From the IMG/VR virus record IMGVR_UViG_3300037010_002844, positions 186,001 through 250,000 of that record: a stretch of 64,000 bases of DNA. The stretch is one strand, 5' to 3'. Shown one piece after another: positions 1 to 48,629 of this stretch; the first letter of the stretch is position 1; every line of letters starts with the position of its first letter. Made by a program: the position numbers and the translations under genes. The notes beneath the pieces were generated by a model. It did no database searches. It saw only the letters and a program-made list of their open reading frames with translations, and was not told the origin of the DNA.

Positions 1-1
1 C

Positions 2-1777
2 ACCCTCCACGTCTTCAAAGGCGCTGCCAAACAAGATGGAGGCAGTAGACAGCATGTTGCCTAGGTGAACGTAGCTCAGTTCTTCGACCCCGTCGTCACC
101 GACCATGATGGTCCTAAGGCTCTCGCTCGCCAACAGTTCATAGGCAGGGATAAAGTTGCCATCGTCGCACGGCAGGATCAGCAAGTTCCTAGCACGGACC
201 TTGGGATCATCGTACAGAAAATCGTTGGCGGCTCGAGCCTCTGTGGTGTAGTCAATGACCGACGCCGACAGATCGTGAGCCCGAGGGAAGACGTCGCTCG
301 CAAAGTCACGCAGGTAATTTTCAATGTTGATGTAGTGACCATTGACGCCGAACGACATGGCCACGTTGAACGGTGACTGCGTGGTGCCGTCGACCTCAAA
401 GAAGGGCGTCTGCATGATGCCACCGTGAGTGCCGACGAACTGCCTGAAGGGCGATTCCTGAATGAAGAACGGAGGCAAATAGAAGGCGACCAGGTTCCAG
501 TCGAGCAACTTGGGCCCCTGAGACGCAGAAAACACGATGTCATCGTTGCTCATGTAGAAGCGCTTGAGCGCCACGTCATGAAGTTCAGCATTCAACGGGT
601 GATTGAAGGCTACCGCAGCTGAGATTGGCGCGTCGATTCCAACCGTGCCATTGAGTTGCGTCAGACCCTCACGGAGGGCCGGATCTGCCGCAAAGAACAA
701 TGATTGCTCATTGTTGCCTTTGTTGGTCCCCTCCCAATAGTTGCCAACGCACAGAACCGATGGCATGCCCTGGGCAGGGTCGCCAAACAACAAGGGCGCC
801 ACTGTGCCGCTTGGAATGACGAACAACCCCTTGTCAACGCCGTCAATGTTGAAGCTGCCAGTTCCTTGGTTGATGAGACTCGTGCCCCAGCGAACCACCA
901 CGTGGTGCCAGCGATTCCACTGCAACGAGTTATCGTCAGACAAGAACACAAGATCGTTCGGATAATTTCCTGGCAATGCCTCTGACGGCCGCGTGTCTGC
1001 GCTATGGCTCAACTGGAGCAATAGACGATAGCCAAGAGGCCGACCATTTTGGTCCTTCGCTGAGCCAGTGACCAACGACAAGGCATAGCACGATGAAACG
1101 TGCATGATGGTGCCAGCCTTGAACTGGCCATTGGGCTCCTCTGTCTGGTAACGTGGATTGATGTAGAAATCGAACGAGAATGAACCACTCAATGAGTAAT
1201 TGAGCGCCACGTAACCCTCGTGAGCCTGGTCGCTCATAGAGACATCGTAGTTCGGATACAACAGCACTGAACTCGTCGGAACAGAAGATGCGGTGAAGAA
1301 GTTCAGGGAGTTGTAGTTGGAGTAGGCCCAGTGCGCCGACGGGTACGACGTCCTGTAGTATTTCATCAAGATGTCCTTGACGATCAACTTCCTCGTGGTG
1401 TTTGAGCTGAAGTTGACGGAAGGCGTGAACCTGATGATGTCGAGAATCTTCTGCTTACGCGCTGAGATCGCCTGGCTGTCGACCTTGGACAAGTAGTCAT
1501 CCAGCATCCCAGGAAACTTCTCTGCGATGGTACTGACGTACTTAGCCAGACGCCCCAGCATCGTCAACTGACCGATGGTTGCGTTGAGGTCAGAATCGTC
1601 TTTCGTCGCATCAACGAACCCGGGTAGGGAGGTGACGTCTTTTTCGATCGACGACCGTCGAGCAAAAACGTGAACTGACCCAGTCACGCCCATCGACGAC
1701 GAGGAATATTGCCTAATCGGATTGGCGATGACGCTGAACGACTCTAGGTCGTTCTGGCTAACGGGGGTGAGTGACAT
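2..1777 (-). CDS. LamG/concanavalin-like domain virion structural protein (partial, runs off the window edge)
   Basis: Not in the ORF track. Hand translation from ATG at 1777 (AGGAG upstream): MSLTPVSQNDLESF...FSFDFYINP...WNRWHHVVVRW...FNIDGVDKG...ELHDVAL, a LamG-type pattern. Confidence 0.7.
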   Translation of the reverse strand, partial: MSLTPVSQNDLESFSVIANPIRQYSSSSMGVTGSVHVFARRSSIEKDVTSLPGFVDATKDDSDLNATIGQLTMLGRLAKYVSTIAEKFPGMLDDYLSKVDSQAISARKQKILDIIRFTPSVNFSSNTTRKLIVKDILMKYYRTSYPSAHWAYSNYNSLNFFTASSVPTSSVLLYPNYDVSMSDQAHEGYVALNYSLSGSFSFDFYINPRYQTEEPNGQFKAGTIMHVSSCYALSLVTGSAKDQNGRPLGYRLLLQLSHSADTRPSEALPGNYPNDLVFLSDDNSLQWNRWHHVVVRWGTSLINQGTGSFNIDGVDKGLFVIPSGTVAPLLFGDPAQGMPSVLCVGNYWEGTNKGNNEQSLFFAADPALREGLTQLNGTVGIDAPISAAVAFNHPLNAELHDVALKRFYMSNDDIVFSASQGPKLLDWNLVAFYLPPFFIQESPFRQFVGTHGGIMQTPFFEVDGTTQSPFNVAMSFGVNGHYINIENYLRDFASDVFPRAHDLSASVIDYTTEARAANDFLYDDPKVRARNLLILPCDDGNFIPAYELLASESLRTIMVGDDGVEELSYVHLGNMLSTASILFGSAFEDVEG

Positions 1778-6201: not shown

Positions 6202-9200
6202 CAGGCCTGGTCCTCTCCAACTGTCTCGACAGAGACAATGTACTTCTCGAAGATCAAGTCGCCCTCTGCGTTATCGCGGCGCCGCTGGACATACGTCAGT
6301 TCCGGTCTGAGGCTGGCGTTTCCCAACCTGAGACTAGTCATAGAAGCCGTGGGCTCAATTTCGCCTTGCTTGATCATCAGTTCCAGCGCCTGCTTCCCAT
6401 GGGGTGTGGCCTGCGTCTTTGACACGTCAATCTCGAACGAATAAGGATCGACCAAGAGGTTGAACACTCGATCGAACTGTTTCGGATTGATGATGCGCTG
6501 CGAAATTGCCAGAGGGTCTGCAAGAGGCGTGGTCATCCGCGAAAACTCATTCAGAACACCGAAAGAGTTCACCAGCAGCGGAGCGTCAGACTCCGGCAGG
6601 CCCGCCAGCACCGTGTCTGTCGACGACAACAACGTGTTTTCAGATGACCTCACGTTGGGCGTCAAGTCAGAAAATCCTGACAATGCGACAGTAGTAGACA
6701 GCCCGGCAATTCCCGCAGAATTTGCTAGGTACCTCTGTGTGCCTCCTCCCGCAGCCCGAGACACGAACCCGCCTTTGGCAGAACCCTTCGATGCACCCTG
6801 GGTCGAGCCGAAAAAGATTCCACTGCGGTTGATTCCATCGAGTCCCTGTTGTTTGATCGCTGAAACGTGATTGACGTAGTGGTTGAGCAACAGGTTGACG
6901 AAGTCGGACTCCACCTGCGGCGGTGGATCGACCATGTCGAAGTGATAATCAGCGGTCGAAATGCCAGTCATTGTCCGCAGGTAAACCTCCAACAAATAAC
7001 TGAACACGTGATTGACGTAGAGTTGATCCTTCTCTTGGCGCGTCAAGAAGTCATAGTCTTCGCCGTCCAACGCCTCAACCTCGTTGTCAGAACTACGAAT
7101 GTACTGCACACTGCCGCCCGATGAAAATGCCTGGCTGGCGTCTCGTGTCGGGAATCTTGAGACAATGTCGAACTTGGACACTCCCGGACTGTCTTTGACA
7201 TAGACATCATTCCTGACAGGAAACCGTGACAGCTCAAACATGAACCGCTGCGGTTTATAGACAATGTCGGGATTCTGCATGTCGACCTTGTAGACGGCGA
7301 TATTCACCACGTCGTTCTGGCGGACATCAAACGAGGTCTTCTTCAACTTCTTGATGTCGACCTTCTGCTGCAGGTGTCTGGAGAAGCCTAGTGGGATTCC
7401 GACAGTCAAGATCTTTCTCGAGGCTGCTGATGCCTGCGTGAACTCATCAGTCGACAACATGTCGTCGATCGCCCGTCTGATCTTGGGAGTGATCTCAGCA
7501 TCATCGAGGGCGATCAATTCATCGTCTGAGTCAAATTCACCGTCACCGTTGATGTCGCCAGGTTCGTTGCCCGTCCTCGAGTGACCCGCCAACGCAGACC
7601 TAAGGTCAGCAACGTTACTCGACAGCAACCTGATCTGTTGCTCGCTCAGCAACATATGCAACATGCTGGGGTCACTAAGTAGCCCAGTGACCTTCTGCAA
7701 TTCCGCCAGCGACTCAGGACCGTTCAGATAGTTGATGACATTGTTAACAGAATTAATCAACTTCGTCAAGCTATTCATGACGGTGAAGCTGCACGTCTCT
7801 GACAACATGATCTCGCGACCCAAGCGTTGATCGACCTCCAGGACTGAGTTCGTGTGACTCACGTGACGTGCATCAATGATCAATTGCGTCTGGCCTTGGT
7901 CAATGTGCTGACCCACCACGTGACGATCGCCATAGAGGTCGATGAATGACGTGAAGATGTCAACGATCGACATAAAGATGACGGTATCAGGGTGACCGCC
8001 GTACCTCGTGACCGAACCATTGAAGACTGCATTGTTCCTCTTGAACGTTGCCAACAGGCGACCCATCATCGAGATCACGGCAGCCAAGAAGTGGCCACTG
8101 CCCGTCTTCAACGCAGTCCTGACGGTCTCAATGTTGACAGTACGCTGATCCTTTCCCGACGTGGGCTTGCGGGCGGCGTGGCTCTGATTCGTTGTTCCCA
8201 ACAAGGTCGTAGACGTCTGCTTGGTTGCAGAGATGAGCTGCTTCACGATCAGATCGACCAAGGCATCAGATGTGGGAGTGTTGTCCTGATCAAGCGCCGC
8301 ATCGAAGAACTCTACGTTGTGAAGGTAAGCTTTCGACATCTTGGTGACCACGTAGAGCAACAGCAGTGAACGTAGTCGAGTGTCTGACTGAGCGACTGTA
8401 AACAATGGTAGCAGTGGATCATTTGCGATTTCAGGCGTCAAGCCCACCGCATCCGACGTCATCATCTCAGCGCGAATCTCATCAAACAACGAACGAGGAT
8501 TTGCGATCAGCGACGCAAACTTGCCTGCGCTGTTGGAGTACTGATCGACGTACTCAGACTGCAGTAGATCAAGACCGTCGACGATGACATTGAAGTTCGT
8601 CAGTGCGTTCTGCAGTACATCACGAAACTCAATCAACCTAGTCACATCATAGCGATTCCCATGTGTAAGCAATACAGAATCGACATAGTAGCTGCTGCCC
8701 GGGGTCAACGTGCCGGTGTCACCTTCCACGTACCGCGACTCAAAAGGCAACACCGCCACATTTTGTGCAACTTGTTGCTGCGCAAGAGAGGCTAGCGTCT
8801 TGGACTGAAGTGCCGGAAAGTCTGTGATGTTGCTACCAAACTGTCCGACCACCCGATCGAACATCTGCAGATTGCCTTGCGGGCTGACCTGATAACCGTA
8901 GTAGCTCTGCAATGATTTCTGAACCTCGGGCTTCGACAGACCCAAAGAATACCTGTGCTCCCGCGACAGGGCATTGATCAAGCATGCCAGTTGCATCTCA
9001 CGGTGCTTGAACGACACGCCTTGATAAATTGTGTTGTAGCTCGAAATTAGAGAGTTGACGTACTGCGGGATCTGCGGCGGCTGCATCTGCGTGATTGAGT
9101 CGAGGCTTGGCAGCGTTGGGAGGACCGCGGTGTAGTCGAAGCGCTTGATTGACGGCGTCTGAGTGATAGCAACGGGTGATGAATCATTCCGCTGCGGTGC

Positions 9201-16071: not shown

Positions 16072-16323
16072 TCAGGACTTCTTGGGCGCCTTGCCGGGAG
16101 CCTTCGAGGCCTTTGCCGACTTCTCAGTCTTCTTGACCTTGTCGAGTTCGACCGTCAGCTTGACGAGCTCCGTCGCCTTGATCTTCAGAGTCCGCAGACC
16201 CTTCCGGGCACGCACGCCGGCCGCTGCGGTGCCGCGGGCGTTCTTCGCCACATCAAGCTCGATCGACGACATGACTTCCTTGATCTCATTCCACTTAGCA
16301 AGCACCTGATTGTCGGTATCCAT
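16072..16323 (-). CDS. Histone H1-like (Hc1-type) nucleoid protein
   Basis: GTAAAGVRARKGLRTLK motif plus Lys/Ala-rich tail; AGGAGG upstream. Confidence 0.7.
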   Translation of the reverse strand: MDTDNQVLAKWNEIKEVMSSIELDVAKNARGTAAAGVRARKGLRTLKIKATELVKLTVELDKVKKTEKSAKASKAPGKAPKKS

Positions 16324-16401: not shown

Positions 16402-18063
16402 CTATGACAACGCCTTTGAAAACTCTTCAGGGAACATACGCCCGTTCATCCTGTAGAACCTTTCCCAGTCTGCGTCGAGAATGTACGAGACAGCGTGGTC
16501 AGTCTCATTGCGAACTGATCGACCCATCGCCTGGATGATCGACTTGACCGTCTGATACGTGTACCATGCCTTGTTCTTGGCCATTCGCTTCTTGATGACT
16601 GCGTCGCCGAGGTACGGAAACGGGACCTTACACAAGATCTGGAACCTGCTCGCTTCATCAGCGAGGTCAACGCCTTCCATCATCGACGGCGACAGCAACA
16701 CCGTTGGGTCGGTACCCTCGAGGTGCTGATGCAACACTGCATCGCGGTTGGTCGAATCGTGGTTCAACAACCTGTTTGACTTAACGTGGTCCTTGACATA
16801 CTGAGCGATACGATAGTTGACGCAGTGAATGATGCCCTTCTCATTCGGGTGTTGGTCGATCAACATCTTGACAGCCTCTGCAAGAGCGGGCAGTGTCTTT
16901 TCGATGTTGTCCATCGACATTGACCCAGCTGGGATGTAGTGCACTGGCCTATTCTCGGGTGGGAAAGGCGACGGAATGCTGAGGAACGCCACGTCGACCG
17001 GATCGAGGCCAATCGACTTGCAAAAGACGTCCTTGTCAACAACTGTCGCTGACATCATCAACGTCCGCCCGCCCATCCTGAACAGCGAATCGTAACTGAA
17101 CTCTGAGACATCGATGGTTTTGAACTCGAACTTTCGCATGCCTCGAGCCCCAGCGGGCGGCCGCACCACGTTCATCACCCAGTTGTCGGGCTTGTATGCC
17201 GTTAAGAAGCGATTGACCTTGCAAATGTGCTTGTCGAGCATCTCGTACTGCTTGCTGAGGTCGTCAAAGCCTGACCCAGAAGAGTCGAACTTTGACTGCA
17301 ACTCCTTCTCAACGTTGCGGATATACTTACCCAAGGCCGTCTTATACGTCTTTGAGATCCACTCGTAGACGGCCTCCTGAGTGTTCAGGACTGGCACGCG
17401 GCACTTCAGCACCTGCTTAGCAAACTTCTCAGAGAAGGTGACCTCGATGAACTTGCCGAGCTCTTGCTCGGTATTGTGACACTCGTCGACGATCAACAAT
17501 GCCCTGGGCTTCAGTTGCTTGCCGTACGTCGTCTCAGAGAGGAAGTACGAGAAGTTGGTGATGGAGATGGGCGACTCCAGAAAGTCAGCCTTGTCTTTGG
17601 CGTACCTACAGCAGCCGCCCTTGCCACAGTGCTTCTGAAACTCGGTCCCGAAGATTCGCTTTCCGAGCTGCTTCAGCACACGTCGGGATTCAGCACACGT
17701 CTGGTCTTGATAGAACCCGCACTGGTAGTTGGTCGACGACTTGATGCTGCGCATCAGGTTACGAGCTGGGCCAACGCCTGGGCCAAAGTCATCGAGATAC
17801 TGCTGCTGCAACACCTTCTGCGTCGTCAGGATGTAAGCACCCGACAGAGGCATGTTTTCCTCATCGAGTGTCACCTCACCGTGTGCTTCAAGGTAACGAG
17901 CGATACAGACGCCGGTCGCGGACTTGCCACAACCCGTGCCCATCTCGAGGATGACATAGCGCTTGCCGGACTCGTAGGCATCGAGTGCAAACTCAATTGC
18001 CTTCCGTTGTTCATCACGGATATTAGAGAACGGAAAATACCGCACGTAGTCATGCTTAGGCAT
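16402..18063 (-). CDS. DinG/XPD-family SF2 helicase
   Basis: Q motif (RDEQ), GTGCGKS, DECH, SAT, MMEGVD, QAMGRSVR; Fe-S-type Cys cluster. Confidence 0.9.
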   Translation of the reverse strand: MPKHDYVRYFPFSNIRDEQRKAIEFALDAYESGKRYVILEMGTGCGKSATGVCIARYLEAHGEVTLDEENMPLSGAYILTTQKVLQQQYLDDFGPGVGPARNLMRSIKSSTNYQCGFYQDQTCAESRRVLKQLGKRIFGTEFQKHCGKGGCCRYAKDKADFLESPISITNFSYFLSETTYGKQLKPRALLIVDECHNTEQELGKFIEVTFSEKFAKQVLKCRVPVLNTQEAVYEWISKTYKTALGKYIRNVEKELQSKFDSSGSGFDDLSKQYEMLDKHICKVNRFLTAYKPDNWVMNVVRPPAGARGMRKFEFKTIDVSEFSYDSLFRMGGRTLMMSATVVDKDVFCKSIGLDPVDVAFLSIPSPFPPENRPVHYIPAGSMSMDNIEKTLPALAEAVKMLIDQHPNEKGIIHCVNYRIAQYVKDHVKSNRLLNHDSTNRDAVLHQHLEGTDPTVLLSPSMMEGVDLADEASRFQILCKVPFPYLGDAVIKKRMAKNKAWYTYQTVKSIIQAMGRSVRNETDHAVSYILDADWERFYRMNGRMFPEEFSKALS

Positions 18064-26891: not shown

Positions 26892-27587
26892 AGTGTGTCA
26901 GTCAATTGTTGACATGTACGTCAATGAAAAGCTGTCGTCAGTTGGCATCCTGGAACGCCTTTAGGGCGCGGGTGTTGACATCAGTTACTCTGGCGTTATC
27001 AATCTGATTCATGCAGCAGGTGTGATGCGGTCACGAAGTGAAACAACGAAACACATCACGTTCACAGACACTAAAAAGTGTAAACACGGTACGTCAGATG
27101 ACGTGTGGCGGCGGGAGGTGTTGGCACGGGTCGAAACGTTCGAAGAAGCAAAACGACTCGAAGTTAAGTTCATTGCTGAATATAACACCTGTGCACTTGT
27201 TGGCGGCTTTGGGTATAACATGACCCTGGGCGGTGATGGTGGCACTTTGTCGGGCGTAGCAAACCCGTTCTATGGTCACAACCACACTCCAGAATCTGTC
27301 GAGAAAATTCGACGTACCATCGGTGACCGCCTCTCCGGATAGAACAACCCACAATGGGGTCGAAAAGGTGTGTTGAGTCCGGCATGGGGGTTAAACATTC
27401 GGAAGAGTCTCGACGTAAACGTAGTGAAAAATTACGTGGTCGTACGATCAGCGAACAAGCAAAGAACAACATGAGACAAACGTCTCAGAATCCTGAAACC
27501 AAGCGTCGTCGTAGCGAAGCACAAAAGCTTCGTCGACAGAAAGAGCGAGAAGCACGTGCGAGTCTACATCAATCGTCGACCGATTAG
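26881..27587 (+). pseudogene. Decayed homing endonuclease (HTH + partial GIY-YIG + NUMOD3)
   Basis: One frame with TAG at 26962 and 27340, then a frameshift at the G-run 27386-27390; E.KFI.EYNT..GYNMT.GGDG, NPFYGHNHTPES, KHSEESRRK; boundaries approximate. Confidence 0.8.
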
Positions 27588-40324: not shown

Positions 40325-40800
40325 GGGTTGACATGGACGACGATCCGGATTACGATGACATCATGAACGTATTGGACATCAACAACATCCACGGTACCCT
40401 TTGGCAGGGTGCCATTCCGCCGGCAGGCAGCCTGCTGCGTGATAAGGGTTTTGATGTCGTGGTGCTCGCAGCAAGTGATCACCAGGACGCCTCATGGTAC
40501 CCGGGTCTTCATGTCATCCTCGCACCGGGCGATGACGATGAACGTCCACATCGACTTATGAACTTCTTGCCGACATGGCAGGCGGCCGCCCGAGAGGTAG
40601 CCAGCCACGTCAGGTCAGGCAAGAAGGTCCTAGTCACATGCATGTCAGGGTACAATCGCAGCGGGATTGTGACCGCGATGGCCCTTCATGAGTTGACAGG
40701 TTGGAATGGCCACGTCTGCGTCGAGACGATCAAACGGCGCCGTCAGTATGCCTTGTCGAACAAGACATTTGTGGCTTGGGTCCACGACAACCTCAAGTAG
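40321..40800 (+). CDS. Dual-specificity/protein-tyrosine phosphatase-like protein
   Basis: CX5R motif VTCMSGYNRSG; acidic loop GDDD. Confidence 0.8.
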   Translation: MRVDMDDDPDYDDIMNVLDINNIHGTLWQGAIPPAGSLLRDKGFDVVVLAASDHQDASWYPGLHVILAPGDDDERPHRLMNFLPTWQAAAREVASHVRSGKKVLVTCMSGYNRSGIVTAMALHELTGWNGHVCVETIKRRRQYALSNKTFVAWVHDNLK

Positions 40801-40942
40801 GTTTAAGCCCTCTGTGTCAATCTTTGTACATAAAAGACGAATTTGACATCAACATGTGTCCTTTATGTGCAAAGATTACAGAAGTTTTAGGGACCTGTAC
40901 AAGACGCCACCTGTGTTGTATTTACAATACAAAGGCATCGCC

Positions 40943-40996
40943 ATGTACGTCATGTATACGCAGAACTATCCACAGATGATTCTCCGCGAGCATTAG
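40943..40996 (+). CDS. Putative leader peptide (17 aa, ends TAG)
   Basis: MYVMYTQNYPQMILREH*; AAGG upstream; continues in frame as LPRGPP into the next gene. Confidence 0.55.
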   Translation: MYVMYTQNYPQMILREH

Positions 40997-41006
40997 CTGC
41001 CGCGAG

Positions 41007-41071
41007 GTCCTCCTTTTCGCGCTCTTACCTCACCCGTGATTGAGTGCACTTTCAGAAAGAAAAGAGAGGAC
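41007..41071 (+). promoter_or_regulatory. Anti-SD/SD attenuator hairpin
   Basis: GTCCTCCTTTTC (41007-18) pairs GAAAAGAGAGGAC (41059-71) as 12 bp with one bulge; nested GCGCTC/GAGTGC helix. Confidence 0.65.
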
Positions 41072-41074
41072 ATC

Positions 41075-41422
41075 ATGAAGAACATCTATTTGCGCGTACT
41101 TCGCGCCAAGATCCGCGGTCTGCAGGCCACCGGCGTTTCGATCCACAATCGTATCCGCAAGACGAGCGGCAAGCGACGTGATTCGCTGTGGCAGGAAAAG
41201 CGAAGGATTGGAACCTTCAACAGGGAGCACCTGATTGCTTACGGTTTGCTTCGCGGCATCCCGTATGAGAGGATTGAACATTGCTCAAACGTAAATCGAC
41301 CCAGTCCCGCAAGGATTCACGAGCTGATGCTCGCCCACATGCCTCCTTGGGAGGCAAAAAAGCTCACGGTGGAGGCGGTGCAGGCCCTTCTCGAGCCCAC
41401 GGAAAAAAGGCTCGAAAAATGA
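41075..41422 (+). CDS. Basic hypothetical protein
   Basis: GAGAGGA SD; R..HLIAYGLLRG.PYE.IE motif; coupled to the PTH2-like gene. Confidence 0.75.
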   Translation: MKNIYLRVLRAKIRGLQATGVSIHNRIRKTSGKRRDSLWQEKRRIGTFNREHLIAYGLLRGIPYERIEHCSNVNRPSPARIHELMLAHMPPWEAKKLTVEAVQALLEPTEKRLEK

Positions 41423-41778
41423 GTGGTGGAAACCACAAGGTTAAGACGGGGGATAAATTGTACCTCGTCACGCGGCGAGACATTGCGCCTGGTTACCAGG
41501 CCGTGCAGTCTTGCCATGCCATTCGACAGTTCACGGCTGATCATCCTGATCGCGATGGTGAGTGGTTTACCAACTCTAACTACCTCGCGTTGCTGTCAGT
41601 GGCCGATGAGGTAGAGCTGATGCGTCTTATCACCGCTGCCAAGGACCATGGCCTGCGTTGGAGTGCTTTCCGTGAACCTAACGTGGGAGGCGCCATCACG
41701 GCGATCGCCATCGAGCCACATCCCAAGACGGCAGAGCTCTGTAAGAACCTGCCACTGGCGCTCAAGGAACTGTCATGA
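41419..41778 (+). CDS. Peptidyl-tRNA hydrolase II (PTH2)-fold protein
   Basis: Start moved to MSGGNH; KLYLVTRRDI..G..AVQSCHA, L.LSV.DE.EL, FREP...GAITAIAIEP. Confidence 0.7.
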   Translation: MSGGNHKVKTGDKLYLVTRRDIAPGYQAVQSCHAIRQFTADHPDRDGEWFTNSNYLALLSVADEVELMRLITAAKDHGLRWSAFREPNVGGAITAIAIEPHPKTAELCKNLPLALKELS

Positions 41779-42131
41779 GCGACGAACACAAGGCGCCCGA
41801 CACAATCACCTTCGATGACTTCTTGAAGGTCGATATTCGTGTGGGCGAAATCACTAAGTCAGAGGCAGTGCCCAAGAGCGACAAACTTGTCAAGCTCGAG
41901 GTCTACTTTGGATCCGAGATCGGCTATCGCACCATTATGGCCGGCATCGCTAAGAGCTACCACGTGGAGATGTTGGTCGGCACTCGGGTGTTGGCCGTGG
42001 TCAACCTTGCGCCTCGCAAGATGATGGGCGTTGAATCACACGGAATGCTTCTAGCAGGACATGACCCGGTGACGGGCACAGTTACACTTGCCACGTGTAT
42101 GGGAGTTCCCTGGGGAGAACGAATCGGTTGA
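41775..42131 (+). CDS. tRNA-binding OB-fold protein (Trbp111/CsaA/MetRS C-terminal-like)
   Basis: ITFDDF.KVDIRVG.I..E.VP.SDKL, VVNL.PRKMMGVESHGMLLA. Confidence 0.9.
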   Translation: MSDEHKAPDTITFDDFLKVDIRVGEITKSEAVPKSDKLVKLEVYFGSEIGYRTIMAGIAKSYHVEMLVGTRVLAVVNLAPRKMMGVESHGMLLAGHDPVTGTVTLATCMGVPWGERIG

Positions 42132-42138
42132 GCAAGGG

Positions 42139-42165
42139 CGGGCGGTGAAATTCACCGCCCGTTTT
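42139..42165 (+). terminator. Intrinsic terminator
   Basis: CGGGCGGTG-AAATT-CACCGCCCG followed by TTTT. Confidence 0.75.
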
Positions 42166-42172
42166 GCTTGCC

Positions 42173-42781
42173 ATGAATCATGGCAACGGAAATCGCGAAA
42201 GTTTCTTCAGGCATTTGGATTCGTTCCTAGCCCCGAGCGTCATCCTCAACGTGCAGCATGCCTACACGATGGCAAAGTATGGCAACCGCGCGTAGGTTCG
42301 AAAGGAATTGGACGACCACGGTGATCCCGTCAGGTACTTCGAGCACGTGCGCCAAGTGGCCATCGTCCTGATCGACAAGGCCAAGATCGTCAAGTCAGAG
42401 ATGATAATCTCTGCGTTGCTCCATGACGTGGCGGAAGACGCTCCCAACCTGCCGCCCGTGTTGATCGAGCGCTGCTTCGGCACCGATGTCATCGAGATCA
42501 TCAAGACTTTGAACAAGGTGCCCGAGGAAGGTTATTTTGAGTGCTTCAACATGTCGACCGACTGGCGTCCGTTCATCAAGGCACGTGATCGGCTCGACAA
42601 TCTCAGGACGTTGGGGGCAGCCTCTAAGGAGTTCCGTGTCAAGCAGGTCGCAGAGACCCGCGAGAAGTACTTTCCGTTGTTCGACGTCATGATGACTCTG
42701 ACGCCCGCACCTATCTCAATCACCCCCAGACGCTGCGTGACCTGGTCCGAGCCGAGACGGAGAAACAAGTGCTGCTACTGA
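42173..42781 (+). pseudogene. HD-domain (RelA/SpoT hydrolase, Mesh1-like) gene interrupted by in-frame TAG
   Basis: ATG 42173, TAG 42293-95 in A*VRK; ALLHDVAED and DRLDNLR motifs; C-terminus looks degenerate. Confidence 0.8.
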
Positions 42782-42800
42782 CCGTACAATTTTGAGGTTT

Positions 42801-42873
42801 GCCTCGGTAGCTTAGCGGGCTAAAGCTGCGGTCTCTAAAACCGCGATCGTGGGTTCGACTCCCACTCGGGGCA
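42801..42873 (+). tRNA. tRNA-Sup, anticodon CUA (amber suppressor)
   Basis: Acceptor GCCTCGG/TCGGGGC, D arm GCTT/AAGC, anticodon stem GCGGT/ACCGC with loop CT-CTA-AA, T arm GTGGG-TTCGACT-CCCAC; CCA not encoded. Confidence 0.9.
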
Positions 42874-42875
42874 CT

Positions 42876-42947
42876 GCTCCTGTAACTCAATGGCAGAGTG
42901 ACGGATTCTAACACCATGCGTTGAGGGTTCAAGTCCCTTCGGGAGCG
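42876..42947 (+). tRNA. Second tRNA with CUA anticodon, anticodon stem degenerate (possibly pseudo)
   Basis: Acceptor GCTCCTG/CGGGAGC, D arm ACTC/GAGT, loop TT-CTA-AC, stem ACGGA/ACCAT with 2 mismatches, T arm GAGGG-TTCAAGT-CCCTT. Confidence 0.75.
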
Positions 42948-43016
42948 TCATGGAAACTGCCTTTATCTGTGATCACTGCGGCAAGCGTTGTAGCCTCGAG
43001 CAAATGCTTGAGCTCC

Positions 43017-43250
43017 GTGAGTGATCCAGCCTTCTACAACAACTCTGGTCTAGAGAGGCTCGCTGAATAGTTTCGACTCCGGCGCGATGAGCCAGAAGAA
43101 CCGCTTCAACGTTATCATCTGTGTCATGAGTATCATCGCTATGGCGGTACATGGCGCATGGTGCCCTGTGGACCGATGTATCACGAGACAGAGCAGGAGT
43201 ACTTCATTCACTGGGTTGGTGGCTCGATGAACTTCGCGCAGAAACGTTGA
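43017..43250 (+). pseudogene. Small ORF interrupted by in-frame TAG
   Basis: GTG..17 codons..TAG(43068)..TGA; 77 aa if read through; fills the gap before 43263. Confidence 0.4.
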
Positions 43251-43262
43251 TACATTGTTGGA

Positions 43263-44093
43263 ATGAGCGACAGCGGCCTGGATGAGGCGAAGCCCATTTT
43301 CGAGAACCTTCCCACCGGGAAGCCTCACATTTCGTTTTCTGAACTGCGCGACTGGCAGGATTGCTCATATCGTCACAAGCTGAAGTACATCGACAAGATC
43401 GGCGTCTTCGAGCCTGTTCCCATCATCGACTTTGGGACCGCGGTCCACTCGGCCTGTGAGAAGTTCCTAGAGACGCGTGTGATGGAACCCGAGATTGCCC
43501 ATATTTCTCTGAGGAAGTTCTTCGAGACGCACAAGGCCCGTCCTGCATACACGCCTGAGCTCCTGCAACAGATGTTGGCTGAGGCCACCTCGATTTGTGC
43601 AGACGTGCCGGCATTCATGGACGAGAACTTCCCGGATTGGGAATACGTTGACGCCGAACACGAGCTCTACGAGTCGATGGAAAAGCATCCACATGCCTTC
43701 AAGGGCTTCATCGACGGCATCATCAAGGCCAAAGGCAAGCGTGGTGAACCCGTCTATTGGCTGATCGACTGGAAGACAACCGCATGGGGATGGACAGCCG
43801 ACAAGAAGTCTGACCCACGCGTGCTGCAGCAACTGGTCTTCTACAAGAACTTCTGGTCATCCAAGACAGGCACCGATCCCAAGCACGTCCGCTGTGGCTT
43901 CGTCCTGTTGAAACGCAGTGCCAAGGTAGGCAGTCACTGCGAACTCGTCAAGGTGTCAGTGGGTGACGTCACCACTGGTAGGTCGCTGAAGGTCCTCAAC
44001 AATGCGGTGGTTTCCATCCGCCGTAAGATCTTCATCAAGAACAGGGACTCTTGCACCTATTGCGACTACAAGAATACCGAGCACTGCACTTGA
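43263..44093 (+). CDS. PD-(D/E)XK nuclease, Cas4/RecB/AddB-like with Fe-S Cys motif
   Basis: DCSY, FGTAVH, GFIDGII, LIDWKT, QLVFY, CTYCDY....C. Confidence 0.88.
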   Translation: MSDSGLDEAKPIFENLPTGKPHISFSELRDWQDCSYRHKLKYIDKIGVFEPVPIIDFGTAVHSACEKFLETRVMEPEIAHISLRKFFETHKARPAYTPELLQQMLAEATSICADVPAFMDENFPDWEYVDAEHELYESMEKHPHAFKGFIDGIIKAKGKRGEPVYWLIDWKTTAWGWTADKKSDPRVLQQLVFYKNFWSSKTGTDPKHVRCGFVLLKRSAKVGSHCELVKVSVGDVTTGRSLKVLNNAVVSIRRKIFIKNRDSCTYCDYKNTEHCT

Positions 44094-46347: not shown

Positions 46348-47508
46348 ATGAAGACTGTGATTCTTCGGGGTCCAACGTTGACCCAATCAGGATACGGCGT
46401 TCACGCTCGCCAGGTTGCACGTTGGTTGCTCGACAAGCCCGGTATCGATGTCAAATTTCACTTGCTGCCTTGGGGTGACACGCCTTGGTTGCTCGACAGC
46501 AACGCACATGAAGGTCTGGTGGGCGAAGTGATGAAGCGCTCGGTCGGCCCTGACGCCCATAGTGACGTGTCATTTCAGCTGCAGTTGCCCAATGAGTGGG
46601 ACCCAAAGGTTGCTGCTTGGAACGTAGGCATGACAGCCGGTGTCGAGACAGATCGCTGCAACCCATCGTGGATTGAATACTGCAACAGGATGTCACAGAT
46701 CATCGTTCCAAGTCAGCACGTGTTGGCCAACCTGACAAGCACGGGCAAGGTGTCGACGCCCATCGCAGTGGTTCCTGAGTCGTTCGTTGATTCGGTGCTG
46801 TTGGACGACGACAAGCTGCCTAAGTTGCCCGAGTTCTCAACCAAGTTCAACTTCTTGGTTTTTGGTCAGTTGACGGGTAACAACCCGTTCAACGATCGCA
46901 AGAACACCTTCTTCACCCTGAAATGGCTGTGTGAAGCATTCAAGGATGACAAGGACGTGGGCATCGTCATCAAGACCAACGCCGGGCGTAATACAAAGAT
47001 CGACAGGAACATCATCAAGAATGTCCTGTCGGGCGTCCTGGCTGAGGCTCGCAAGGGTCCGTATCCCAAGGTTCACCTGCTTCACGGTGACATGGATGAC
47101 CTTGAGGTAGCAGCGTTGTACCGTCACCCACAGATCAAGGGCCTGGTCACCTTGACGCGGGGCGAAGGCTATGGATTGCCGATCCTCGAGGCAGCTGCCA
47201 GTGGCCTACCAGTCATCGCAACCGGATGGTCAGGGCACCTCGATTTTATGAAGCTGGGCAAGTACGTTAGCATCTACTATCAACTCGGTGAGGTACACCC
47301 GTCCAGGATCGATGGCCAGATCTTCGTGAAGGGCTCCAAGTGGGCCAATCCTTCCGAGGAGGACTTCAAGAAGCGAATCGTCAAGTTTCGCAACTCTCAT
47401 ACCATCCCGAAGGAGTGGGCCGACGAGCTAGCCACTCGCCTGCGAGGACACTTCAGTTTCCCGGAGATCGCCAAACAATATGACGAACTCCTGAAAGACG
47501 TGCTCTGA
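46348..47508 (+). CDS. GT4-family glycosyltransferase
   Basis: Start moved to MKTVILRG; QSGYG, DRKN, TRGEGYGLPILEAAASGLPVIATGWSGHLDF. Confidence 0.92.
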   Translation: MKTVILRGPTLTQSGYGVHARQVARWLLDKPGIDVKFHLLPWGDTPWLLDSNAHEGLVGEVMKRSVGPDAHSDVSFQLQLPNEWDPKVAAWNVGMTAGVETDRCNPSWIEYCNRMSQIIVPSQHVLANLTSTGKVSTPIAVVPESFVDSVLLDDDKLPKLPEFSTKFNFLVFGQLTGNNPFNDRKNTFFTLKWLCEAFKDDKDVGIVIKTNAGRNTKIDRNIIKNVLSGVLAEARKGPYPKVHLLHGDMDDLEVAALYRHPQIKGLVTLTRGEGYGLPILEAAASGLPVIATGWSGHLDFMKLGKYVSIYYQLGEVHPSRIDGQIFVKGSKWANPSEEDFKKRIVKFRNSHTIPKEWADELATRLRGHFSFPEIAKQYDELLKDVL

Positions 47509-47816
47509 TGATTACGACGATTGTCATACTGTCGCTGCTCTGTCTGACACTTGCGTTCTTCATCTACGTTAGCGTAAAGAGGAACCTCGAGTACCAAGAC
47601 AAGATGCAGGAAATCGTCGATCAGACAGAGGTAGCGCTTGACGTGTTGAACACGTGCTATCAACGAGCGGCCGCACGGGCAGAGCTCGAGGTCATGAGCG
47701 ACGAACCCGTCGTCCGTGAGCTCGTGCAGGACATCAAAATGTCCCGTGACGCCATACTGCTTGTTGCAAACTTGATTGTCGAGCCGATTCAGGACGACGA
47801 GGAAGGCAACAAATAG
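47508..47816 (+). CDS. Small membrane-anchored protein
   Basis: N-terminal TM helix ITTIVILSLLCLTLAFFIYV; ends TAG immediately before the next ATG. Confidence 0.75.
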   Translation: MITTIVILSLLCLTLAFFIYVSVKRNLEYQDKMQEIVDQTEVALDVLNTCYQRAAARAELEVMSDEPVVRELVQDIKMSRDAILLVANLIVEPIQDDEEGNK

Positions 47817-48629
47817 ATGGCCGCCCGCAAAAAGACGACCCAGAAATCACCCGCAAAGAAGGCAGCACTCGCCGCAATCGTCCCATCTTCTCCCCCTGAG
47901 AAGGAAGAGCCCAAGACGGAGGAACAGAAGAAGGCTGCGAAGCAGTCGAGGATGTACTTCAATCAAAATACGCAGGCCGCGATCTGCGCCTACCAGAAGG
48001 AAACTGACAGGAAGGAACGCGAGAGGCTCTACGTCAATGAAATCATGCCAGCGTTTGAGAAGTTGACAGAGAACCTGATCAACATTCACAAGTTCACCAG
48101 CCTGCACGACACCTACGATGATTTGAAGAACGACTGCGTCAACTTCCTCTTTGAGACGATTCACAAGTTCGACGGCACGCGAGGGACCAACGCTTTTTCG
48201 TACTTCAACGTGGTCGCCAAGAACTGGTTGATCATCAGGACAAAGCAGAAGGCACAGCGCGTCAAGCGTTCGGTGTCGCTGGACGATCCCAACTCGCTGA
48301 ATGCTCATGAGTTCAACATCGTCGAAGAGCACAACATGGTCCCGTCTGCTGAGATGATCATGGAGAATGAGACCAGCGCAGCTGGCGTCCTGAAGATGTT
48401 GTACGAAATCAGGACCCGCGTCAAGACAGAGAATGAGCTGGCGTGCATCAACTCCATCATCACCATCTTCGAAAACGTTGATGATGTTGACTTGTTGAGC
48501 AAGAGTGCCATCCTGCTCTACATGCGTGAACTGTCGGGCCTGAGTCCTAAGCAGTTGACAACGACGATGCAGATGGTCAAGAAGCACTATCGCAAGTTGA
48601 AGGGCGACGCTAAGTTTCGCCTGTTCTGA
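47817..48629 (+). CDS. Putative phage late sigma factor (T4 gp55-like)
   Basis: YFNQ..Q.AI..Y, DL.NDCV.FL.ETIHKFDGTRGTNAFSYF resembles sigma region 2 and gp55. Confidence 0.65.
   Translation: MAARKKTTQKSPAKKAALAAIVPSSPPEKEEPKTEEQKKAAKQSRMYFNQNTQAAICAYQKETDRKERERLYVNEIMPAFEKLTENLINIHKFTSLHDTYDDLKNDCVNFLFETIHKFDGTRGTNAFSYFNVVAKNWLIIRTKQKAQRVKRSVSLDDPNSLNAHEFNIVEEHNMVPSAEMIMENETSAAGVLKMLYEIRTRVKTENELACINSIITIFENVDDVDLLSKSAILLYMRELSGLSPKQLTTTMQMVKKHYRKLKGDAKFRLF

Follow-up and report, generated by a model that had tools for sequence, protein, structure and literature searches.

Two adjacent tRNAs with the amber anticodon CUA at a conserved tRNA locus of an uncultured jumbo phage

Phage-encoded tRNAs with the amber anticodon CUA have been described in several systems. 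In gut phages that use genetic code 15 (crAss-like phages, Lak phages and others) the CUA tRNAs of the phage are charged by the host, and TAG is read as glutamine (10.1101/2021.08.26.457843; PMC9523058). According to the published route of this recoding, the suppressor tRNA is acquired first and the in-frame stops appear later (10.1101/2021.08.26.457843), and release-factor genes sometimes accompany the suppressors (10.1101/2021.08.26.457843; PMC9523058). CUA tRNAs are also found in jumbo phages that keep the standard code: XacN1 has two of them in each terminal repeat, for which no target was found (PMC5852040), and RsoM2USA has one (PMC8504454). Here we describe a pair of adjacent CUA tRNAs in positions 186001-250000 of the IMG/VR record IMGVR_UViG_3300037010_002844, a contig of 309,433 bp which derives from an uncultured jumbo phage of sediment and microbial-mat metagenomes. 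This 64-kb stretch, analysed over its whole length, is called the window, and coordinates given without a locus name are window positions. The pair occupies a locus that is conserved in related phages, most of which have tRNAs with a different stop-type anticodon at this place. We put at about even the chance that the two are genuine UAG-reading tRNAs of the phage, probably working amber suppressors, which represent the version of a conserved stop-codon-type cassette in this lineage.

The window phage is like the code 15 phages in that its CUA tRNAs are encoded by the phage itself. It differs from them in GC content (54%), in its sediment and mat source and in the use of TAG as the stop codon of 5 of 51 genes. 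Its late structural genes lack in-frame TAG codons, and at most one conserved gene, which is otherwise damaged, contains one; moreover, the release factor of this phage is RF1-like, not RF2. Like XacN1 and RsoM2USA it is a large environmental phage of myovirus type that keeps the standard code, encodes many tRNAs and has one or two tRNAs of amber-suppressor type. In those two phages no candidate target was found and the suppressors are located within the main tRNA array, whereas the window pair lies apart from the array, in a conserved module beside a TAG-bearing gene. No sequence relationship of the window phage to XacN1 or RsoM2USA was detected. Tandem CUA pairs consisting of a 75-nt and a 91-nt tRNA were found in four other IMG/VR contigs (L012, L040, L045 and L051). 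As in the window, two different CUA tRNAs are directly adjacent there, but these pairs adjoin a tRNA-Leu and lie in contigs of lower GC content. L012 and L045 look TAG-recoded, because coverage by open reading frames (ORFs) rises clearly when TAG is taken as a sense codon, and the four contigs may be copies of one phage. The initial annotation of the window had considered a heterologous CUA pair in a standard-code genome unusual, but it has precedents in XacN1, with its two CUA tRNAs per terminal repeat, and in the tandem pairs of these four contigs.

Exactly two tRNAs were detected by ARAGORN in the window, at 42801-42874 and 42875-42949 on the plus strand, each with the anticodon cta. Both gave full-length matches to the Rfam family RF00005 (model positions 1-71 of 71), which place tRNA1 at 42801-42873 (+; 60.4 bits, E 1.4e-10) and tRNA2 at 42876-42947 (+; 48.8 bits, E 2.1e-07), the gathering score of the family being 29 bits. 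They are separated by a spacer of 2 nt (CT). The anticodons, at 42835-42837 in tRNA1 and 42908-42910 in tRNA2, stand in the 7-nt loops CUCUAAA and UUCUAAC, respectively, with U33 and A37 in each. The observation of two adjacent CUA tRNAs is confirmed: the initial annotation, which had named a tRNA predictor as a check, had described them as 2 nt apart with canonical 7-nt loops, and ARAGORN and RF00005 both bear this out. The anticodon stem of tRNA1 (GCGGU/ACCGC) is paired in all five positions, the whole molecule contains no non-standard pair and its centroid fold is a cloverleaf. In both tRNAs the elbow elements are present (GG in the D loop, GTTC in the T loop; G17, G18, G53, T54, T55 and C56 invariant). 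The discriminator base is A73 in tRNA1 and G73 in tRNA2, and CCA is encoded by neither gene.

A global alignment of the two tRNAs has 51 identical positions in 77 columns, and the acceptor stems, D arms and discriminators all differ. With bodies so far from near-identical, a recent tandem duplication was rejected; on this point the initial annotation, which had argued from the differing bodies and from A73 versus G73, was right. It had gone too far in calling the two tRNAs unrelated, since the nearest relatives of both are the tRNAs found at the same locus of related phages (67-77% identity outside the anticodon arm). ARAGORN labels the pair 'Pyl', a label that the program gives to any CUA tRNA and that was rejected. 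The architecture of tRNA-Pyl is characterized by a 6-bp anticodon stem, a 3-nt variable loop and a short D loop without GG; the window tRNAs, by contrast, have 5-bp anticodon stems, variable loops of 4-5 nt, GG in the D loop and a standard T loop, as ordinary class I tRNAs do. The anticodon arm of tRNA1 also occurs in 49 other IMG/VR stretches, in nearly all of which it is called as part of a CUA tRNA. Three JGI assemblies and four public DNA runs contain the same sequence, their main contigs being identical to it; this excludes an assembly artefact. No ribozyme or other RNA family was found adjoining the pair, and a consensus scan of 40700-43400 gave no promoter-like site on the plus strand before the tRNAs.

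Related loci were collected with the protein sequence of the hydrolase encoded just upstream of the pair (117 loci, plus three further relatives with wide flanks) and with the PD-(D/E)XK exonuclease encoded downstream, which fetched the relatives L001-L008. The gene order Pth2, tRNA-binding protein, hydrolase, tRNA(s), exonuclease is conserved, and relatives whose hydrolase is at least ~60% identical to the reference homolog P0002 have one or two tRNAs directly after the hydrolase gene. The same tRNA position and gene order were seen in L061 (tRNAs at 8622-8695 and 8710-8782), L063 (8622-8695 and 8706-8779), L065 (8606-8679 and 9163-9235) and others. In most relatives the cassette tRNAs do not have a CUA anticodon. 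They have an 8-nt anticodon loop of the form N-Y-U-U-C-A-A-N, with the core U-UCA-A, which is not present in the window tRNAs. When 24 distinct tRNAs of this kind were aligned, the cloverleaf was 95% paired, 19 of the 21 pairs showed compensatory changes on both sides and the pair closing the 8-nt loop was formed in all 24 (16 G-C, 8 A-U). The pairing and the covariation argue that the cassette tRNAs are under selection as tRNAs. The 8-nt loop reads as UCA with one extra nucleotide on the 5' side, the sole reading that gives pyrimidine 32, U33 and A37 in every member; the alternative is a four-base anticodon, UUCA.

CUA in a 7-nt loop occurs twice in the window and once each in L002, L072 and L094, and L089 may carry UUA. 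The closest relative is L002, whose exonuclease is 78% identical. In a tree of the hydrolase the window is nested in a clade (SH-aLRT 87-90, a modest support) in which every other member has the 8-nt U-UCA-A loop, and this nesting indicates that CUA is the derived state. CUA is found in at least three separate lineages of the tree (window, L072 and L094), where it replaced another stop-type anticodon each time; in the window both members of the cassette have switched. Being closest to the family tRNAs outside the anticodon arm, the window tRNAs are diverged paralogs of one phage-family cassette.

Among the classical bacterial amber suppressors are supE and su7, the latter derived from tRNA-Trp and inserting Gln; Gln or Lys are the usual insertions. 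The window tRNAs share with them the anticodon CUA, which in the classical suppressors arose by a single change. They differ in that no sense-codon parent can be identified for them: the parent state, as seen in the relatives, is another stop-type anticodon in an 8-nt loop. A natural 8-nt anticodon loop is known from the yeast mitochondrial tRNA-Thr, which reads the sense codons CUN and is linked to a change in codon meaning (PMC3113583). The cassette tRNAs of the relatives have the loop length in common with it and differ by their stop-type core, while the window's own loops are of 7 nt.

The gene preceding tRNA1 encodes a hydrolase of Rel/SpoT type (HD_4) and contains an in-frame TAG. Read from the ATG at 42173 on the plus strand it has 202 codons, close to which stand the 203-216 aa of the homologs, and a single in-frame TAG as codon 41 (42293-42295); in the JGI annotation it is split into a 40-aa gene and a 157-aa gene. 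The N-terminal 40 codons (42173-42292) match the homologs in 25 of 37 residues, and the remainder (42296-42781), which continues in the frame of the same ATG to a TGA at 42779, matches Pfam HD_4 with E 3.6e-09 and finds homologs down to E 3e-65. The TAG replaces the conserved Gln of a H-R-x-Q-x-R-K motif, Q in 58 of 59 homologs. The family profile matches the Rel/SpoT and Mesh1 hydrolase domains in PDB, and the TAG column coincides with the Gln of their HRGQLRR (H-R-G-Q-x-R-R) motif. In relatives the corresponding codon is CAG (51) or CAA (23); the nearest relatives have CAG, from which the TAG differs by a single transition. The read-through product is 56-73% similar to the relatives, on a par with the neighbouring genes, and the gene ends 20 nt before tRNA1. 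The sequence around this TAG is suggestive of UAG being read as Gln but does not decide the matter, because the same gene is frameshifted, a downstream gene is broken and no hydrolase gene is seen in the 250 nt that precede the L002 tRNA, up to the contig end (see below). The codon may be a nonsense allele that is tolerated or rescued, a programmed codon, or a sign of plain decay.

The rest of the window gives the picture of a standard-code genome. Under code 11, 91% of its length is taken up by ORFs of 150 aa or more, and the 51 tiled genes end in TGA (40), TAA (6) or TAG (5). Genes without interruption include those for baseplate proteins, the head maturation protease, a helicase, PhoH, NAD-salvage enzymes and sugar-modifying enzymes. 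Recoding of TAG throughout the window (genetic code 15) was therefore rejected. The initial annotation's statement of a standard code stands for the window on the strength of the ORF coverage and the TAG stops, with a reservation for the gene just upstream of the pair, where a TAG interrupts the frame at a conserved Gln. An apparent non-coding stretch of 2 kb at 1-2014 was discarded as such; most of it belongs to the 3' portion (1-1777, minus strand) of an 835-aa gene, which continues beyond the window edge. No cultured or close relative was found among deposited phages.

What can be said on expression, charging, the inserted amino acid and any read-through is deduced from the sequence. A single precursor would contain both tRNAs and probably the hydrolase message as well; RNase P and RNase Z would separate the tRNAs, CCA would be added later and host synthetases would charge them. 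The charged tRNAs would compete with release factor 1 at UAG and cause partial read-through in infection. The TAG-ended genes, ~10% of the genes of the phage, would then gain C-terminal extensions, and TAG nonsense alleles would be tolerated or rescued, as for example the Gln41 codon of the hydrolase, a site that speaks for Gln as one inserted residue. According to the initial annotation, the two tRNAs may insert different amino acids. Compared with 286 phage tRNAs and with the phage's own array, both bodies are weakly Lys- or Asn-like, and neither tRNA had a BLAST match in E. coli genomes. Within the anticodon, glutaminyl- and lysyl-tRNA synthetases recognize mainly U35; at the discriminator position, A73 favours lysine and G73 glutamine. 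On this basis Lys for tRNA1 and Gln for tRNA2 is a reasonable guess. The hydrolase TAG would favour Gln for at least one of the two.

The main tRNA array of the phage consists of 26 ordinary tRNAs and begins ~5.5 kb past the right end of the window on the same contig (L185 1818-12399). It lacks the isotypes Gln, Lys, Trp, Asn, Asp, Ile, Met, Tyr and Ala. The CUA pair is ~27 kb away on the opposite strand and is similar to no member of the array. One call within this region is a 96-nt tRNA with a four-base '(gttc)' anticodon (L185 2234-2329). A T4-type RNA ligase 1, a second Pth2 and a NADAR protein are encoded by the same contig (L183 15834-17105, 21711-22214; L185). The array also contains a release-factor homolog (L185 6654-7323, plus strand), ~10.5 kb past the right end of the window. 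Its C-terminal 185 residues score 192 bits with RF1, 121 with RF2 and 84 with PrfH; it has the GGQ motif and an RF1-type P-x-T loop (PPT) and is without domain 1. The first part of the gene, of 37 codons, ends in AGG GGT CTT TGA and the remainder is in the +1 frame, which is a frameshift site of prfB type. Relatives of this gene were found at 80 IMG/VR loci, with PPT in 77 of them and the junctions CTT TGA in 36, CTT TAG in 15 and CTT TAA in one; one relative shares a contig with L070, a phage with an 8-nt-loop cassette. Of the 43 loci with a TAG junction or with none detected, 11 have a CUA tRNA within 2.5 kb of the RF1-like gene, versus 0 of 36 loci with CTT TGA. With amber suppressors and an RF1-type factor in one genome, a phage could favour either read-through or termination at UAG.

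The other genes of the conserved locus are on the plus strand, like the pair. A Pth2-type peptidyl-tRNA hydrolase (41419-41778; Pfam PTH2 E 1.6e-07), called by JGI and syntenic in relatives, is followed by a stand-alone tRNA-binding protein of the Trbp111/CsaA/MetG C-terminal type (41775-42131; Pfam tRNA_bind E 2.3e-22, NCBIfam metG_C_term E 1.6e-31), whose position is also kept. Between the latter and the hydrolase ATG, a terminator-like GC-rich hairpin followed by a T-run can be read from the sequence (42140-42169). In relatives the genes for the tRNA-binding protein and the hydrolase overlap or abut, unlike in the window, where the hairpin separates them. Downstream, the PD-(D/E)XK exonuclease (43263-44093; Pfam PDDEXK_1 E 2.2e-17) marks the edge of the conserved locus. 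In L002 (872-4195, plus strand) the exonuclease ORF continues for 1107 aa into the glycosyltransferase region, and the inserted segment resembles an intein or a homing-endonuclease element.

Among the genes that end in TAG, a dual-specificity phosphatase (40333-40800, plus strand) has its next in-frame stop one codon further on. A small membrane-anchored protein (47508-47816, plus strand) abuts in frame the ATG of a gp55-like late sigma factor (47817-48629). The TAG of a DNA helicase (16402-18063, minus strand) is a true stop, as the protein matches the PHROG profile over its full length. A gene of Hc1 (histone H1) type (16072-16323, minus strand) lies 78 nt downstream of the helicase in the same frame with no intervening stop; given the full-length helicase match and a separate ATG for Hc1, the shared frame was regarded as a coincidence. 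Extension of the five TAG-ended genes to the next non-TAG stop would add 1, 31, 64, 109 and 270 codons. The phosphatase orthologs in relatives with UCA-type tRNAs end in TGA in 11 of 11 cases; for both the phosphatase and the membrane-protein gene TAG is a derived stop, as TGA stands at this place in the relatives' orthologs. Fusion of the membrane protein with the sigma factor by TAG read-through is not supported: the two are in frame in the window, L002 and L061 and not in L063 and L065, and the stop codon is independent of the tRNA type. No neighbouring gene was found whose stop codon tracks the tRNA type. In L059, which is the same phage from another sample, a 105-nt in-frame deletion (window 47818-47922, L059 8207-8212) removes the start codon and the first 35 codons of the sigma factor directly after the upstream TAG and keeps the frame with the membrane-protein gene. 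Elsewhere in the window, a homing-endonuclease remnant of GIY-YIG/NUMOD3 type (26965-27474, plus strand; phrog_314 E 9e-11) is bordered and interrupted by TAGs (26962, 27340). It is probably a decaying mobile gene, and its TAGs were discarded as evidence of read-through because the remnant is too degraded.

Several observations weigh against a simple suppressor function of the pair. A DNA alignment revealed a 1-nt deletion near 42705 in the hydrolase gene, found in the window only, and the last ~25 codons are out of the family frame and specify 25 unrelated residues. The family-conserved C-terminal tail is encoded in the -1 frame at 42706-42795 (plus strand; 61% identity to P0002 residues 179-201, E 2e-06) and runs to a TGA 5 nt before tRNA1. 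In L002 the hydrolase gene is absent from the 250 nt upstream of the tRNA, where the contig begins. L072 and L094, which have CUA tRNAs, keep CAG or CAA at the Gln codon, and this weakens the case for TAG as a sense codon. A survey of about 60 window genes and of ~18 kb of additional flank gave no clean in-frame TAG besides that of the hydrolase; the unfiltered scan for in-frame stops was noisy, since off-frame ORFs align too, and candidate TAG-split ORFs in the extra flanks were rejected as not gene-like. As to conservation of the hydrolase TAG, every available copy of the phage is the same strain. On the other side of the pair, a small CxxC gene (42950-43250, plus strand) is broken when compared with its intact orthologs (L002 536-862, L061 8785-9063): an N-terminal part of 24 codons (42950-43024) is terminated by a TGA at 43022, the conserved C-terminal part follows in the +1 frame with a TAG at 43068-43070, and a match to the orthologs requires both a +1 shift at the TGA and read-through of the TAG. 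Lesions are thus clustered on both flanks of the tRNAs. In tRNA2 itself three of the five anticodon-stem pairs are formed, with the mismatches C28.A42 and A31.A39 in the Rfam alignment (the initial annotation had noted two mismatches here, next to a fully folding tRNA1), and the minimum-free-energy fold is not a clean cloverleaf. TAG stops are not avoided, and most of them have no second stop close behind, so that a systematic backup is lacking. The phage-encoded RF1-like factor would oppose read-through of UAG. Finally, phages with UCA-type cassettes end 77-90% of their genes in TGA, and no in-frame TGA or other in-frame stop was found in the relatives' orthologs of the window genes. This makes it unlikely that the ancestral role of the cassette was the reading of recoded genes. 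Efficient UGA suppression would be hard to tolerate in these relatives, which leaves a termination-related or a non-decoding role for the cassette, and it is mainly for this reason that we do not hold the simple suppressor explanation at better than about one half.

The same evidence can be arranged in other ways. The hydrolase Gln41 TAG could be a maintained sense codon, so that the enzyme is made only once the co-transcribed tRNAs have accumulated, the two forming a small self-contained recoded unit within a genome of standard code, with programmed dependence or incipient recoding of TAG to Gln. The position of the TAG at a conserved Gln of the catalytic motif, one transition from the relatives' CAG, the good conservation of the protein on both sides of it and the end of the gene only 20 nt before tRNA1 all agree with this, as does the fact that the sole clean in-frame TAG of ~60 window genes sits in the gene adjoining the tRNAs. 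The order of events would also follow the published recoding route (10.1101/2021.08.26.457843). It is nevertheless an unlikely explanation, as the frameshift removes the conserved tail of the very same gene, the CUA phages L072 and L094 retain CAG or CAA, L002 has no hydrolase in the 250 nt upstream of its tRNA where the contig begins, and all available copies represent one strain. Decay of the whole region, with one or both tRNAs, tRNA2 especially, as functionless relics among pseudogenes, would account for the TAG and frameshift in the hydrolase as well as the frameshift and TAG in the CxxC gene. The tRNA2 ortholog of L002 (250-321) has CUA and a perfect anticodon stem (5/5), that of L072 (4624-4695) has CUA and 4/5 pairs with A31.A39 kept; relative to L072, tRNA2 has gained a second mismatch and folds poorly, and L002 has lost one tRNA of the pair. 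We find decay improbable all the same. tRNA1 is flawless, the other stems of tRNA2 are all kept, its acceptor and T stems differing from those of L072 by compensatory changes as read from the alignment, and a canonical U33-CUA-A37 loop is not expected in a decaying tRNA. That both tRNAs acquired the same new anticodon points to selection on the anticodon.

The cassette might also be selected for a role other than the decoding of phage reading frames, either in general control of termination on host or phage messages, perhaps with the RF1-like factor, or as tRNA decoys against host toxins that attack tRNA, the hydrolase TAG being a bystander. The relatives with the UGA-type core, which use TGA for most of their stops and have no in-frame TGA in the neighbouring genes, speak for such a role, and the neighbours of the pair (Pth2, the tRNA-binding protein and the alarmone-type hydrolase) are tRNA- and translation-related genes of kinds that have been proposed to act in counter-defence. 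The T4-type RNA ligase 1 and the second Pth2 of the genome, and the distance of the pair from the 26-tRNA array, fit in with this. On the other hand, tRNA1 is equipped in every respect for efficient decoding, beyond what a pure decoy would require, and the stop codons of the neighbouring genes do not change with the tRNA type; we know of no target toxin or interaction. On balance, such a role has a low probability in our estimate. A bolder proposal, which we judge quite unlikely as a whole, is that the phage runs a reprogramming of termination, in which two paralogous stop-codon tRNAs switch between stops and act jointly with an RF1-like factor that is without domain 1 and is made by a prfB-style +1 frameshift. 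Most relatives would then be readers of UGA or UGA-N through the 8-nt loop and the window lineage a reader of UAG, and stops would be read or obeyed codon by codon in the course of infection. The reading of the pair as lineage-specific amber suppressors is the one we retain, at the even chance given above.

Phage suppressor tRNAs, standard-code jumbo phages with CUA tRNAs and, elsewhere, tandem heterologous CUA pairs were known already. New here are the conserved position of the cassette beside tRNA-related genes, the joint replacement, in both members, of the 8-nt loop of UGA type by a canonical CUA loop, the TAG at a conserved Gln in the adjoining gene and the environmental setting at 54% GC.

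Suppressor tRNAs of phages are known mostly from low-GC gut phages that are already TAG-recoded, and their purpose in standard-code phages is unexplained. The locus described here is a tractable case, in which a conserved cassette changes the stop specificity of both its members together, beside a gene with a TAG at a conserved Gln. If this TAG is read, the locus would represent an early step of recoding in an environmental phage of 54% GC and would speak against low GC content as a prerequisite. Otherwise the cassette must have another purpose, in termination control or counter-defence, and the 8-nt-loop tRNAs and the frameshifted RF1-like gene would become the key elements. The 8-nt-loop relatives and the RF1-like gene are more novel leads than the CUA pair itself.

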